Below, piece after piece: positions 11,999 through 18,176 of a stretch of DNA of 64,000 nt (position 1 is its first letter; every line of letters begins with the position of its first letter). The notes beneath the pieces were generated by a model. That model made no database searches, was not told the origin of the DNA, and saw only the letters and a program-made list of their open reading frames with translations. A program made the position numbers and the translations under genes. The DNA lies in sequence record OR532817.1; one strand, given 5' to 3'.

Positions 11999-12485
11999 GG
12001 AGGCGACTGTATTCAGTACTGAATCAATTGATCGTTGCGTAATCAGATTCAGTTAGCGTAGTATTAGCTGGGACGCGTACTTGTGAGCCGCAACCACAAT
12101 GTACTTAAAATCCAACGCGTGGAGGGTAAGCATTCTGTACTGAATAGCAGAAGGGCTACAAAAACTTATACTTCAAAAAGGTTCGGGAAGTATTCGTAAT
12201 AAACCGTTTAATCGTCTTATCAGTACTATGAACAACCAATATATTTGTGGTGGATATTATTGGACTCAAGTAGATGATATTATCTTTGTACGCTTTCTAA
12301 CCAAAAGGTCAGATAATAAAAATGTAAGAAAATTTCAGTACTGATAGCTGGAACCTTACTATAGCAAAAAGACCTGATATGACTCGCTTAGGTCTTTAAA
12401 TTATATAATGCGAGGGACGCTACGCCTTAGTTTAGGGCTAAATCGTAAGGATTGCGTACTAAACCGCCTTGAGAGTCCCAAGGCA
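11999..12485 (+). ncRNA. candidate ~490-nt structured ncRNA
   Basis: No ORF; about 10 helices (e.g. AAAGACCT/AGGTCTTT, CCAATA/TATTGG, ATACTTC/GAAGTAT, AGGCG/CGCCT). Confidence 0.55.
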
Positions 12486-12600
12486 ACTTTTAATTAAAAT
12501 AAATTTGGACAAAACACAAAAAGGTGATATAATGATTCTATCTGAAGAAGATTGGGGTGTTTATCCTAAAGACGAATTTGATGGATTTTAATAAAAAATC

Positions 12601-12630
12601 TTGAACAAAAACAAAATAATGTGATATAAT
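12601..12630 (+). promoter_or_regulatory. extended -10 promoter for ncRNA
   Basis: TTGAAC ... TG-A-TATAAT. Confidence 0.65.
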
Positions 12631-12634
12631 ATTA

Positions 12635-12772
12635 GTACTGAATGAGGATAGGTGCAGTTGGTGAGATACCGCATGAGAAATCATAGACACCATAGACACC
12701 GTAGAAAGCGAAGGGCTTGGTGAGCGACGGCAATAGACAAGCATAGTAGAGGCTTGAAGAACTCATTAGTAC
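12635..12772 (+). ncRNA. structured ncRNA, paralog A
   Basis: Closing stem GTACT(G)AATGAG/CTCATTAGTAC starts at the expected TSS and is followed by a T-run; core shared with 13373..13472. Confidence 0.65.
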
Positions 12773-12878
12773 TTTTTTTAATTTAAAGAATTATGCACTA
12801 GTTGTTTTAAATCAGTAAAACACCGAAGATGTAAGTACTATGTAGTATGTCAAAATCAAATACAATAAGAGTATACAT

Positions 12879-13352
12879 ATGAAAGTCGAATTGGGAAGTA
12901 CTATCAAAGCAGGTTATACTGTTTCAGTTACAACGTGGGAAAATGATGCAGATAATTATCAAACAAATGACATTGTAGGCTTATCTAAAGAAGATGCCAA
13001 AATGTTTATTGATACTTTACCCATTTTTAAATCCGTTTATAGTAAAAAGAAAGGTCTTGGAAACAAAGAACTTAATATTAACCAGTACTTGGGTAAGTTC
13101 GAAGACCTAATCAATAACAATATTATCACAGTGTCATTTGCTGAAAAATATTTTGGTTATATTAACCCAAATAGTGATTATGATGAAGATGAACAACAAG
13201 ACACGATTATTGAAGCATTGTCTGAAATTCTAGGATATCCAGTTGAATACGATTATGGTTTTATCAGAGTCGTTGAAAAAGTTCAAGTACTCTACTTCGA
13301 TGAAGATACTGTAATTCCTTCAGGTTCGAAAGTAGACACCAGTACTTTATAA
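12879..13352 (+). CDS. hypothetical phage protein
   Basis: 157-aa ORF, TWENDADNY motif. Confidence 0.65.
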   Translation: MKVELGSTIKAGYTVSVTTWENDADNYQTNDIVGLSKEDAKMFIDTLPIFKSVYSKKKGLGNKELNINQYLGKFEDLINNNIITVSFAEKYFGYINPNSDYDEDEQQDTIIEALSEILGYPVEYDYGFIRVVEKVQVLYFDEDTVIPSGSKVDTSTL

Positions 13353-13372
13353 CATATAAAATACAGAACAAA

Positions 13373-13472
13373 TACTGAATGAGGATAGGTCATTGTGACC
13401 GGATGAAGTGAAAGGCTTGGTGAGCGACGGCAAAACCCAACCGTAGTAGAAGCTCTAGGAACTCATTCAGTA
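13373..13472 (+). ncRNA. structured ncRNA, paralog B
   Basis: Perfect 11-bp closing stem TACTGAATGAG/CTCATTCAGTA; core GGCTTGGTGAGCGACGGCAA shared with paralog A. Confidence 0.65.
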
Positions 13473-13493
13473 CATTTTAATTTAAAGAATTAA

Positions 13494-13581
13494 GGCCGTA
13501 TGTCCAAATTGGTAAAGGAGACAGACTTAAAATCTGTTGGTGATATTCACCTTCTCGATTCGAGTTCGAGTGCGGCTACCA
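13494..13581 (+). tRNA. tRNA-Leu(UAA)
   Basis: Cloverleaf with long variable arm, ACAGA-CTTAAAA-TCTGT, TTCGAG T-loop, encoded CCA. Confidence 0.92.
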
Positions 13582-13610
13582 AATTTATAGTACTTCATTA
13601 GGTAAACAAT

Positions 13611-13934
13611 ATGTGTACTGAAGCAAGAAGATATGTTTATATTTTGGTTCGCAAAGATTTAGAACTAAAGGATATTATTGTTCAAACTGCTCATGCTTCA
13701 TATGAAAGTGCAAAAGAATTTAAAAATAATGCTGATAGAACATCTATTATAGTTTTAGAAGTCAAGGACTTATACAAACTAAATGATGCTAAAAGTTATT
13801 TAAATTCTAATGGCATTAATTGGACTGTGTATACTGAAAAATCTTTAGGATTTGGAGAAACTGCTATCAGTACTGAAGCACTCAATAACGAACAACGCAA
13901 AACTATGCGTAAGTTCCAATTATTGAAAATATAA
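13611..13934 (+). CDS. second PTH2-superfamily protein
   Basis: YILVRKDL..IIVQTAHASYE, IIVLEV, G.GETAIST, C-terminal FQLL. Confidence 0.7.
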   Translation: MCTEARRYVYILVRKDLELKDIIVQTAHASYESAKEFKNNADRTSIIVLEVKDLYKLNDAKSYLNSNGINWTVYTEKSLGFGETAISTEALNNEQRKTMRKFQLLKI

Positions 13935-13947
13935 ATATAATAACAAA

Positions 13948-14023
13948 GCGGTTATCGTATAAAGGCTATTACCTCGGTTTTCCAAACCGATGATGAGGGT
14001 TCGACGTCCCTCTAACCGCTCCA
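13948..14023 (+). tRNA. tRNA-Gly(UCC)
   Basis: TCGGT-TTTCCAA-ACCGA, encoded CCA; T-loop has 8 nt (TTCGACGT). Confidence 0.9.
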
Positions 14024-16528: not shown

Positions 16529-16532
16529 CACA

Positions 16533-16606
16533 TTGTACTCTTCTCCCGTAAGGAGAATGACAAAAAGCTATCCGAAAGATAGAAAGCCTGAATTAACAGG
16601 GTGCAA
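16533..16606 (+). ncRNA. candidate 74-nt four-way-junction RNA
   Basis: TTGTAC/GTGCAA closing; TTCTCC/GGAGAA, CTATC/GATAG and CCTG-AATTAA-CAGG hairpins. Confidence 0.55.
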
Positions 16607-16618
16607 TTAAAATACATT

Positions 16619-16693
16619 GGTTCGTTGGCCTATTGGTCGGCCAGCAAACTGTTAATTTGCCTCAAACTAGTTCAATTCTAGTACGAACCGCCA
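16619..16693 (+). tRNA. tRNA-Asn(GUU)
   Basis: GGTTCGT/ACGAACC, GCAAA-CTGTTAA-TTTGC, encoded CCA. Confidence 0.9.
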
Positions 16694-16737
16694 TTTTTAA
16701 TCCGAATGAACTGTAGTTCGATAAATAACATTAATAT

Positions 16738-17307
16738 ATGTTATTAAAGGACTACATTTTCATGGGAAGAAAACAATCAGAAGAAACAAAAAATAGAATT
16801 TCACAAGCTTTAAAAAATAAATCAATATCTCTTCCAGTCGAAGAAGTTATTGAAAAATATAAAAGTGGAATATCTATTGTAAAATTATCACAGTACTATA
16901 AATGCAGTAAGTCAAAAATAAGTTCTATACTAAACGATAATAATATAAAATCAAATAGAATTTTAAATAAGAACAAGTTATGTGATAAACATAACATTGA
17001 ACATATACAACAACCAAATGGCAAATGGGTATGTTCACAATGTAATACTGAAAGAGTTTCTGAAAGACGTAGACAATTAAAAATCTTGGCAGTAGAATAT
17101 AAAGGTGGATGTTGTGAAAAATGTGGATATAATAAATGCATAGCTGCGTTAGAATTTCATCACTTAGATCCTTCACAAAAAGATTTTTCTATTAGTAAAG
17201 AAGGAGTCACTCGTTCTTTTGATAAAATTAAAACAGAACTTGATAAATGTATTATGGTTTGTGCTAATTGTCATCGTGAAATTCATGATGATGAAAGAAA
17301 AGAATAA
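16738..17307 (+). CDS. HNH homing endonuclease with N-terminal NUMOD3-like/HTH segment
   Basis: RKQSEETKNRIS; CEKCG...LEFHHLDP...CANCHREIH. Confidence 0.85.
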   Translation: MLLKDYIFMGRKQSEETKNRISQALKNKSISLPVEEVIEKYKSGISIVKLSQYYKCSKSKISSILNDNNIKSNRILNKNKLCDKHNIEHIQQPNGKWVCSQCNTERVSERRRQLKILAVEYKGGCCEKCGYNKCIAALEFHHLDPSQKDFSISKEGVTRSFDKIKTELDKCIMVCANCHREIHDDERKE

Positions 17308-17308
17308 T

Positions 17309-17373
17309 GGGGTATGTATCCGAGAACACCTCATGGCTTCCAACGCGTGGAGAGGTGCGGAACATCCCCGCCA
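17309..17373 (+). ncRNA. candidate 65-nt CCA-ended hairpin RNA
   Basis: GGGG(T)ATGT/ACATCCCC + GCCA; internal ACCTC/GAGGT and TCCA-ACGCG-TGGA. Confidence 0.5.
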
Positions 17374-17378
17374 TTTTT

Positions 17379-17503
17379 GGACAAATCGTACTGAATTAGT
17401 ACTGTAATAATAGACACTTATTGCTGTAAACTGGAATGCGGTATACATTCCTTCAGATACAGAGTGTGACAGTATGATGTTAAAGGTATCCTTTGACTGT
17501 CCA
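17379..17503 (+). ncRNA. candidate ~125-nt structured RNA
   Basis: GGACA/TGTCC closing; GTACT-GAATT-AGTAC; nested ACACT/AGTGT, CTGTA/TACAG, GAATG/CATTC; AAAGG/CCTTT. Confidence 0.5.
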
Positions 17504-17529
17504 AATTAATTTAAATGGAGTACTGAATA

Positions 17530-17935
17530 ATGTCCAAATATGTTAATCGACAAAAACGAAAAGCACGTTCCAAGGATGAAATTCTTCAATTGATTCAAGA
17601 AAATAAAAAAGATGTAGTGATTGATGAATATATTTTTCAGTATGGTAATCAACGAGGAATGGTACAAGAAAGTAATGGTAAGTATCATTCTGAGCATTAC
17701 GATCTTATTAAAAGAATTCTATTGAAATAAGGAGAATTACATGTTTTGGAATCTAGTTTGTTTATTTGGTCGTACATTTGTATTAGCTGTTATTCATTCT
17801 CCTGGTATTAAAAACTTTGTTTCATACGAATTCAAAGAATCGTATCACAATAATACTGAAAAGCGTTCAGTTCAAATGTGCAAAGACTTTGGCATTGAGA
17901 TGAAAGAGCCATTCAAAAAATATAGTGATGAATAA
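17530..17935 (+). other. two small hypothetical CDS (17530..17730, 17741..17935)
   Basis: GGAG RBS before each. Confidence 0.55.
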
Positions 17936-18097
17936 AGAAAGTAATCAATAATACCTATCATCTAATATCAGTACTGATGCGTATCAGCAGATGGCTTGAT
18001 GGGCAGTACTGACAGGATACATCGTTCGCCGGGTGCGGGTTCGGTGGATATACGTAAAGTCGTATTGGGTATGCCAAATATAATAATAAAAATATGT

Positions 18098-18176
18098 AAT
18101 AATGTGATAGCTCAAATAGGTAGAGCGGGAGGCCATAGTGCTGACTGGTTTGTGAGTTCAATTCTCACCCATTATT
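18098..18176 (+). pseudogene. degenerate tRNA (possible CAU anticodon)
   Basis: Intact D arm GCTC/GAGC and T arm GTGAG-TTCAATT-CTCAC; irregular acceptor and anticodon stems; no CCA. Confidence 0.55.

Follow-up and report, generated by a model that had tools for sequence, protein, structure and literature searches.

The non-tRNA units of the transfer RNA (tRNA) gene island of Klebsiella phage RCIP0023, a 350-kb jumbo phage of the RaK2 group, look like genuine RNA genes, kept by purifying selection and moving horizontally between the tRNA clusters of unrelated phages, as far as sequence comparison can tell. The stretch analysed here (the window) is 64 kb of record OR532817.1, and a window coordinate equals the record coordinate minus 62000. 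Besides seven tRNAs, its island at 11999-18176 carries about 13 non-tRNA structured units on the tRNA strand, together with seven near-identical promoters and genes for PTH2 and an HNH endonuclease (Table 1). The annotation of OR532817.1 lists six tRNAs and hypothetical proteins at the island, and nothing else. The island is shared by the closely related phages KP13-7, Muenster, RaK2 and K64-1, in which 63-87% of it is covered at 93-98% identity.

The units were delimited from the sequence and each was folded, its stability being expressed as a z score against shuffled sequences; relatives were then searched. Conservation or compensatory changes support 13 non-tRNA units (U1, U3, U4, U5, D3a, D3b, D3c, U7, U8, U13, U14, U15 and U16), and a fourteenth supported unit is the tRNA-like U17. 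About ten such units had been proposed from the sequence alone in the original prediction, and those supported here are indeed co-oriented with the tRNAs and interleaved with promoters. Their strand was set by G.U pairs, and they are encoded inside the tRNA gene cluster on the tRNA strand, as are the species 1 and species 2 RNAs of phage T4. The novelty claimed for them holds against Rfam 15, since none of its 4227 families was matched by any non-tRNA unit as a member at E<=5. Structural covariation in homologues, which had been named beforehand as a test, was found, among others in U5, U14 and the D3 family. Several units recur in unrelated phages, on the tRNA strand and unannotated, with U5, U7 and U14 occupying gaps between tRNAs.

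U5 is a pseudoknotted RNA with three nested helices, P1 (7 bp), P2 and P2a, a pseudoknot GGGUUA/UAACCC and a core of about 45 near-invariant nucleotides. An alignment of nine type A sequences has 96% of its cells paired and both sides changed in 14 of 21 pairs, which none of 500 shuffles equalled, and sliding the partners lowers the pairing to 27-43%. Among 24 core sequences, pair 1 of the pseudoknot is G-C in 19 and A-U in five, with no mixed cases, and pair 5 is U-A in 22 and C-G in two. The covariance model recovers 23 loci with one copy each. Homologues lie between tRNAs in Vequintavirinae, Stephanstirmvirinae, Demerecviridae, Erwinia jumbo phages and the T4-like coliphage mogra (host MG1655), where the neighbours are tRNA-Met and tRNA-Arg, and pattern scans of IMG/VR gave about 25 further contigs; overall, U5 is found in about 35 phage contigs and in two circularly permuted forms. 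Type A, the form of this window and of tRNA arrays, ends in helix P1. Type B, found mostly in aquatic contigs and usually without a nearby tRNA, has P1 capped by a loop and ends in a long helix standing in for the variable P2 insert. One type B copy begins 3 nt past the CCA of a tRNA-Thr, and no gene constantly adjoining type B copies is evident. On one IMG/VR contig (L021:4324-5007, minus strand) the 5' strand of the outer helix, UAUGAGUAGUGGC, is repeated about 50 nt downstream of a type B U5; the repeat hints at a tandem second element, and the U5 model has no match there.

U5 matched none of the Rfam 15 ribozyme classes compared (hammerhead, twister, twister-sister, pistol, hatchet, hepatitis delta virus (HDV)-like, hairpin and glmS), at E<=5 for type A and E<=10 for type B; with such permissive E-values, Rfam 15 gave no family other than tRNAs and the intron for the island or for a type B U5 locus. 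Assignment to the HDV-like theta ribozymes was rejected, because U5 lacks a P3 hairpin, arranges its helices in another order and has a conserved, paired 5' flank. A scan of 185,579 bacterial and archaeal species genomes with the U5 pattern returned 11 matches, all without the rest of the motif and at least five of them plainly coding (a GTP-cyclohydrolase-like EGL..TP.RVA stretch), so U5 looks phage-only. A host origin of U5-U7 was rejected, as there is no match in 5,426 complete E. coli genomes. U5 would be a separate compact pseudoknotted RNA, with a fold that tolerates circular permutation and that would work outside tRNA arrays too.

Four further families resemble parts of tRNAs. In U14, an acceptor-like stem of 7 bp that contains a single bulged base is continued by two further helices and a conserved apical loop (GGCUUCCAACGC), and the RNA ends in an encoded 3' GCCA. 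Its alignment of ten distinct homologues is 100% paired with both sides changed in seven pairs, a result matched by 0-1 of 500 shuffles. A-2, U-1, G+1 and the encoded GCCA are present in all ten, and A-2/U-1/G+1 is the context preferred by E. coli RNase P. Most U14 homologues lie a few bases from a tRNA, and those in loci whose annotation was examined are inside or beside tRNA arrays. Two readings of the apical loop were rejected: as a mimic of the tRNA-Gly anticodon loop (CUUCCAA), since its flanks do not form an anticodon stem, and as a kissing palindrome (ACGCGU), since the palindrome is not conserved. In Klebsiella phage KP13-26, a U14-family RNA with a wholly different apical hairpin (L008:3912-3977) lies 27 nt upstream of U5 (4005-4104), the pair sitting between tRNA-Leu and tRNA-Val, and in phage Cronus (L014) a distance of 7 nt separates U14 from the tRNA-like U17 downstream. 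These arrangements indicate that the RNA families cluster together in other phages too.

U17 is the pseudo-tRNA that had been predicted. Its score against RF00005 (21.7 bits, E 0.62) lies under the 29-bit cut-off, and no other non-tRNA unit scores at E<=5. Its acceptor and T stems covary and its D arm is invariant, and it has no encoded CCA. In place of an anticodon arm, U17 has three pairs and tandem G.A pairs capped by a loop of 5-6 nt that differs in sequence from one homologue to another, which makes normal decoding impossible. A 267-nt query containing U17 matched 85 phage records (T4-like Klebsiella and Yersinia phages, Gamaleyavirus and Erwinia phages); outside the RaK2 group and phage EJP2 the match was confined to the U17 part. 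These homologues are annotated inconsistently, as Cys, Thr, Gln or nothing. On the evidence of its alignments, the pseudo-tRNA is not decaying.

The three D3 units and a copy in phage 121Q have the same fold, a 7-bp closing stem and two hairpins of which the second is stacked on the 3' strand, and the family alignment is 100% paired with both sides changed in five pairs. Reading hairpin 2 as a mimic of the tRNA-Leu(UAA) anticodon arm was rejected, as its loops are 6 or 8 nt long and fail the anticodon-arm scan. U13 has three compensated pairs in 121Q and Hallingskeid. The hairpin CUGAAUURACAG is common to U13 and the D3 units; the window holds four copies, all of them here. U17 has the 7-bp acceptor stem and stacked T arm of a tRNA; in U14, the D3 units and U13 the closing stem, also of 7 bp, adjoins a hairpin. 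The tRNA likeness of the original prediction is borne out in several units, by 7-bp closing stems, T- and D-arm-like parts or the GCCA of U14, and shapes of this sort are excised by tRNA-processing enzymes. A scan of 11998-18177 for anticodon arms (5-bp stem, 7-nt loop, U33, R37) found the real tRNAs only, apart from two matches in open reading frames (ORFs) and one palindrome of the A/T spacer at 13477. Having no anticodon arm, the units would be poor mimics for PrrC, RloC and PARIS-type anticodon nucleases.

U7 is 83-95% identical in Straboviridae (Proteus phage Pm5461, Morganella phage Mm5), Demerecviridae (Proteus phage 2) and Asteriusvirus (121Q-type). In Pm5461 and Proteus phage 2 it occupies exactly the interval between neighbouring tRNAs, beginning 1-2 nt after one and ending 7-12 nt before the next, and in Mm5 and EJP2 a tRNA lies within a few nucleotides downstream. 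The tRNA features deposited for Morganella phage vB_Mm5 (PP397179.1, L004) are on the strand opposite to that given by ARAGORN, and the annotation strand appears inverted. U8 is conserved in 121Q and in the Kuravirus podophage XT18, with two compensated pairs in the basal stem; the XT18 homologue lies in a stretch of 790 nt without an annotated gene (L012:2519-3307), which by eye holds several GC-rich hairpins as well and may be another small-RNA cluster. Four stems of U15 are compensated in its EJP2 homologue (74% identical), and a comparison of U16 with EJP2 shows one stem compensated and one hairpin replaced. U1 keeps its architecture in 121Q and EJP2, its apical hairpin being compensated from CCA..UGG to CCUA..UAGG. 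U3 has a conserved core, UGAGCGACGGCAA ... GUAGUAGA, and in the Salmonella phage 7t3 homologue of U3/U4 the outer stem and one inner hairpin are preserved in a different sequence. IMG/VR scans for U7, U13 and D3 returned reference genomes only. The segment 15722-15746 is a plain hairpin and no more.

Small hypothetical coding sequences overlie conserved RNA units in several records: 17996-18178 in RCIP0023 (U16/U17), L003:7997-8080 in 121Q (U7), L010:7914-8021 in Hallingskeid (U14/U13), L059:2688-2795 in Muenster (U5) and L058:4379-4564 in RaK2 (U14). They are probably annotation artefacts.

Repeated promoters had also been predicted, and all seven found here belong to one repeat family on the tRNA strand, with TTGAAC or TTGACA, a gap of 16-18 nt and TGnTATAAT, that is, a sigma70-type promoter with an extended -10 box. 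Two very short ORFs, 12240-12335 (about 31 codons) and 12534-12593 (about 19 codons), lie among U1, U2 and the first two promoters. The A/T spacer TTTTAATTTAAA, described originally as flanking many of the RNA units, does recur and is enriched: exact copies number four in the region and six in the window, and with one mismatch the window holds 21 matches against 8.7 +/- 3.5 expected, 10 of the 21 within the 6.2-kb region. It is not part of the RNAs; it lies directly upstream of -35 boxes, in the place of an UP element, and also after U3 and U4 without a promoter. In addition to this UP-like position, the spacer may serve as an RNase E site.

Some of the recurring hairpins of the original prediction are copies of a genome-wide palindrome, AGTACT, usually in the context TTCAGTACTGAA. 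The window holds 210 copies of the palindrome (for example at 12014, 12336, 13868, 14079, 15611, 16193, 17969 and 18004) where about 21 are expected, and no hexamer of the same composition is more frequent. Since 70% of its copies are inside ORFs, AGTACT looks like a genome-wide signal acting at the DNA level, such as a protein-binding or modification site, and not like an RNA or promoter element.

To the genes, folds, covariation, distribution, promoters and intron documented here we add an explanation that we favour with modest confidence, namely that the units are small RNA genes, horizontally exchanged and excised by tRNA-processing enzymes like the T4 species 1 and 2 RNAs. The island would be an early-transcribed array of small stable RNA genes, in which seven host-type sigma70 extended -10 promoters, each after an A/T tract at the UP-element place, would drive short transcription units composed of tRNAs, small ORFs and non-tRNA structured RNAs, the last from at least eight families. 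RNase P would cut at tRNA-like stems, where G+1 follows U-1, and at the neighbouring tRNAs; RNase E would cut in the A/U spacers, 3' exonucleases would trim, and CCA would be added where needed. Host tRNA-maturation enzymes would in this way release discrete small RNAs, as with the T4 species, a step suggested by the tight placement of units between tRNAs or by closing 7-bp stems like those of tRNAs. U14, U17, the D3 units and U13 would be tRNA mimics that keep the acceptor, T-arm or elbow side without an anticodon. Such mimics may act in trans on proteins that read this side, with processing and CCA enzymes, synthetases, EF-Tu and acceptor-end-directed toxins as candidate partners.

Several observations weigh against this explanation. 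The outer long stems of U1, U3, U4 and U16 are paired neighbouring copies of AGTACT, so the apparent folding of these units is inflated; the outer stem of U3/U4 is nevertheless genuine, because 7t3 keeps it with unrelated sequence. U2 is unconvincing as an RNA (z -0.9), with no informative variation in relatives, and 15264-15326 was rejected as a structured unit, being poorly conserved with a z of +0.5. U7 carries no thermodynamic signal (z -1.3) and almost no covariation; a consensus fold for it was discarded, as RNAalifold gave a covariation term of only -1.2 kcal and one predicted long-range helix clashes with a local hairpin that is replaced wholesale in Proteus phage 2. Most lineage-specific units are supported by one or two divergent homologues. 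The CCA ends attributed originally to several units come down to one, that of U14. Each of the D3 units is followed closely by an A/T tract and, beyond it, by a promoter, an ORF or U7, so that a purely cis-acting role is possible for them. Finally, co-processing, accumulation as stable RNAs and any function in trans are parts of the explanation that we infer.

The position of the D3 units leads to an alternative that we regard as possible, if unlikely: the units would be only cis-acting punctuation and shuffling cassettes (processing signals, 3'-end protectors, and composite terminator/promoter stem-loops), marking the limits of transcription units and serving as sites of recombination, with no function as free RNAs. 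There is a precedent in the PeSLs of T4-type phages (PMC2839356, PMC4122927), and an A/T tract directly follows every D3 unit as well as U3, U4 and the 15722 hairpin, with a promoter next in line for D3c and the 15722 hairpin. Exchange at the DNA level has left its marks as well. RaK2 has one hybrid unit (L058:736-880), in which the 5' half comes from U3 and the 3' half from U4, and is without the 700 bp between the two copies, including the ORF at 12879-13352 (window 12633-13474), which looks like an indel from recombination between two RNA-gene repeats. Muenster (L059) has an HNH endonuclease like T5 TflIV at the place of PTH2, and RaK2 (L058) an HNH ORF (ORF219) at that of the intron-split tRNA-Met. 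Modular shuffling of DNA, as in PeSL cassettes, exists as a further role of the island. A purely cis-acting account of the units is opposed by the 75-95% identity of U5, U14, U17 and U7 across phage families that share neither promoters nor neighbours, by the pseudoknot and the roughly 45 near-invariant unpaired nucleotides of U5, which go beyond the need of a processing hairpin, and by the terminator scan, which calls U2 alone among the units.

A free-RNA function of another kind was at the heart of the original prediction, in which the units, PTH2, the split tRNA and the pseudo-tRNA form one counter-defence module that sponges tRNA-targeting nucleases or toxins or shields tRNA function; we consider this doubtful. 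Phage tRNAs can neutralise tRNA-cleaving defences, Pth-type enzymes can reverse acetylated aminoacyl-tRNA toxins, and four families in the island mimic tRNA parts. Defences that cleave tRNA bodies or tails are known, with Septu cutting the variable loop of tRNA-Tyr (PMC13096335) and Cas12a3 cutting tRNA tails (PMC12851939). A sponge for PrrC-, RloC- or PARIS-type nucleases is made unlikely by the lack of an anticodon-arm mimic in any unit and by the short, unconstrained loop of U17, and a single module by the finding of several unrelated families that occur in other phages independently of one another and of PTH2. Scans of the island ORFs with Pfam and PHROGs, the PADLOC library not being scanned, found no defence-related protein family. 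For U5, self-cleavage or another catalytic activity that processes its own transcript, as in theta ribozymes (PMC10879173), also seems rather improbable to us: small ribozymes typically show natural circular permutation, a pseudoknot and a highly conserved core, here of about 45 nt, and the type B copy next to a tRNA-Thr would suit such a role, yet no Rfam 15 ribozyme family was matched, its topology is unlike HDV, conserved and base-paired sequence lies 5' of where cleavage would occur, and most type B copies are far from any tRNA. That the units are functionless, decaying debris (pseudo-tRNAs, or remnants of introns or homing endonucleases) is very improbable. The island is a hotspot for HNH genes and an intron, and the RaK2 authors labelled two loci pseudo-tRNAs; compensatory substitutions and near-invariant loops across phage families, and the 85 records of U17 with its covarying stems, largely refute the idea already.

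The tRNA genes themselves number seven, as predicted: six were called by ARAGORN and Rfam, scoring 43-70 bits against RF00005, and tRNA-Met passes after splicing. The intron-split tRNA of the original prediction is the latter, and the insertion is a group I intron of 231 nt (16258-16488) in the anticodon loop, scoring 104 bits against RF00028 (cut-off 50). The upstream exon ends in ...CUCAU and the intron in ...AAAAAG, giving the U before the 5' splice site and the terminal G expected of the class. The intron was placed by comparison with Erwinia phage Hallingskeid, whose intronless tRNA-Met aligns end to end with the two exons. After splicing, the sequence forms a cloverleaf that ARAGORN recognises as tRNA-Met with a slight relaxation of its threshold. 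The intron itself contains no ORF, and a free-standing HNH gene is found 250 nt further downstream; tRNA-Met genes without an intron are also present in 121Q and EJP2. The predicted PTH2 gene was confirmed by a match of ORF 13611-13934 to positions 3-82 of the 115 in profile PF01981 (26.9 bits; cut-off 23), and its orthologue was named Pth2 in the RaK2 paper. According to the same paper, RaK2-type phages have genes of their own for a CCA-adding enzyme, a polynucleotide kinase and an RNA ligase. No match to the Ro/Rsr family was obtained in the Pfam or PHROGs scans of island ORFs.

Table 1 Features of the tRNA island of RCIP0023, in window coordinates
Feature	Position	Strand	Evidence
U1, multi-hairpin RNA of about 150 nt; long closing stem formed by two copies of the CAGTACTGA palindrome	12005-12150	+	z -1.86
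U2, weak candidate small RNA	12411-12487	+	terminator-like hairpin 12466-12484 and T run
Two sigma70-type promoters, extended -10 boxes	12506-12533 and 12601-12630	+	repeat and promoter scan
U3, structured RNA, paralogue of U4	12633-12775	+	z -2.43; repeat family D4
U4, second U3-family copy, 19 nt upstream of tRNA-Leu	13370-13474	+	z -2.88
tRNA-Leu(UAA)	13494-13581	+	ARAGORN, Rfam
PTH2-family peptidyl-tRNA hydrolase, 107 amino acids	13611-13934	+	PF01981
tRNA-Gly(UCC)	13948-14023	+	ARAGORN, Rfam
U5 type A, pseudoknotted RNA	14029-14124	+	covariation, covariance model
D3a, mini-tRNA-like unit of 50 nt	14135-14184	+	z -3.12; family alignment
U7, highly conserved non-coding unit of 187 nt	14191-14377	+	cross-family conservation
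Sigma70-type promoter	14396-14424	+	repeat and promoter scan
U8, extended hairpin RNA	14429-14515	+	z -1.96
D3b, mini-tRNA-like unit	14516-14565	+	z -2.39; family alignment
Sigma70-type promoter	15341-15369	+	repeat and promoter scan
tRNA-Arg(UCU)	15636-15709	+	ARAGORN, Rfam
Sigma70-type promoter; plain hairpin 15722-15746 and A/T spacer upstream	15766-15794	+	promoter scan, folding
tRNA-Ser(GCU)	15863-15951	+	ARAGORN, Rfam
Sigma70-type promoter	15972-16000	+	repeat and promoter scan
tRNA-Ser(UGA)	16012-16099	+	ARAGORN, Rfam
D3c, mini-tRNA-like unit	16108-16157	+	z -3.27; family alignment
Sigma70-type promoter	16179-16207	+	repeat and promoter scan
tRNA-Met(CAU), intron-split	16218-16528 (exons 16218-16257, 16489-16528)	+	Rfam intron, exon alignment, spliced fold
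U13, cloverleaf-like RNA (7-bp closing stem and three hairpins)	16532-16607	+	z -3.35, 0/200 shuffles
tRNA-Asn(GUU)	16619-16693	+	ARAGORN, Rfam
HNH homing endonuclease with NUMOD3 motif	16738-17307	+	domain scans of ORF
U14, rod of 65 nt	17309-17373	+	z -2.68; covariation
U15, multi-stem RNA of 133 nt	17376-17508	+	z -4.30, 0/200 shuffles
U16, structured RNA	17960-18080	+	z -1.80
U17, tRNA-like RNA without anticodon loop	18098-18177	+	Rfam tRNA 21.7 bits; alignments
Intrinsic terminator, end of island	18188-18213	+	terminator scan

Phage tRNA clusters are now viewed within the arms race with tRNA-cleaving immunity, and only their tRNAs are annotated. The gaps between the tRNAs appear here as conserved RNA genes exchanged between unrelated phages and not as spacers, and current annotations often place spurious small ORFs over such units. 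U5, U14 and U17 are defined well enough by covariation to be searched for, deleted and assayed, and the island yields concrete candidates for RNAs that serve in counter-defence or manipulate the host tRNA machinery. A wider reading, which we advance tentatively and think unlikely, is that phage tRNA arrays hide a mobile, unannotated small-RNA repertoire, spanning jumbo, T4-like and T5-like phages, Vequintavirinae, Stephanstirmvirinae and some podophages. Anticodon-less mimics would in that case titrate host factors or defence effectors that read the acceptor end or elbow, and U5 would be a new functional RNA class, for example a ribozyme or a specific binder of a protein or ligand.

Stable non-tRNA RNAs in a phage tRNA cluster are an already known kind, with T4 rnaC and rnaD as the precedent, and theta ribozymes are a second precedent for structured RNAs beside phage tRNAs. 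Against Rfam 15 and the literature searched, what is new is how many families there are and how far they spread across phage families, and also the tRNA-like family without an anticodon, the rod with a CCA end and the pseudoknot motif with permuted forms; priority is uncertain, as a large catalogue of predicted viral structured RNAs (PMC10690425) may include some of them. Like the PeSLs, which are repeated composites of a stem-loop and an early promoter that punctuate a variable region of T4-type phages, the island has indels between close relatives that map to repeats, as in the RaK2 hybrid. The PeSL layout of a stem-loop followed by a promoter is seen at D3c, the 15722 hairpin and U7, with structured parts much larger than in PeSLs. 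PeSLs are short and simple, whereas the island units are 50-190 nt long and multi-helical, with conserved loops, and some are shared across families without the promoter. Theta ribozymes resemble U5 as pseudoknotted non-tRNA RNAs beside viral tRNAs, tied to the processing of tRNA transcripts. U5 differs from them in having no Rfam HDV match, another order of helices, a circularly permuted form and copies away from tRNAs.

Mimics of tRNA are known among the bacterial YrlA and other Y RNAs, viral tRNA-like structures and acceptor-T minihelices. Like these, U14, U17, the D3 units and U13 keep an acceptor stem with a stacked hairpin, or D and T arms, and the side they keep is recognised by a number of proteins, RNase P and the CCA enzyme among them. 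They have no Rfam match to Y RNA or tRNA-like families, however, and in contrast to viral tRNA-like structures they are encoded in the tRNA array of a DNA phage and not at the end of an RNA genome. Phage tRNAs also replace those cut by host defences, as T5 tRNAs do against PARIS or the retron/Septu PtuAB. The genomic neighbourhood is the same, and tRNA-directed immunity is a plausible shared arena; those phage tRNAs are functional in decoding, with altered anticodon or variable loops, whereas the island units cannot decode.

Another close likeness is to T4 rnaC and rnaD, the genes of the species 1 and species 2 RNAs, which lie in the T4 tRNA cluster and are expressed, with a function unknown for decades. 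They are small stable RNAs inside a phage tRNA cluster on the tRNA strand, next to tRNA-Arg, and rnaC ends in a T-arm-like hairpin. Homology to the island units was rejected: blastn at word size 7 gave only chance matches of up to 19 nt, and in the control search rnaC and rnaD of phage mogra were recovered at 86-99% identity. T4 has two such RNAs, expressed late, whereas the island has about a dozen in at least eight families, behind early-type promoters. The island thus opens a fresh route to the 50-year-old question of what the T4 species 1 and 2 RNAs are for.

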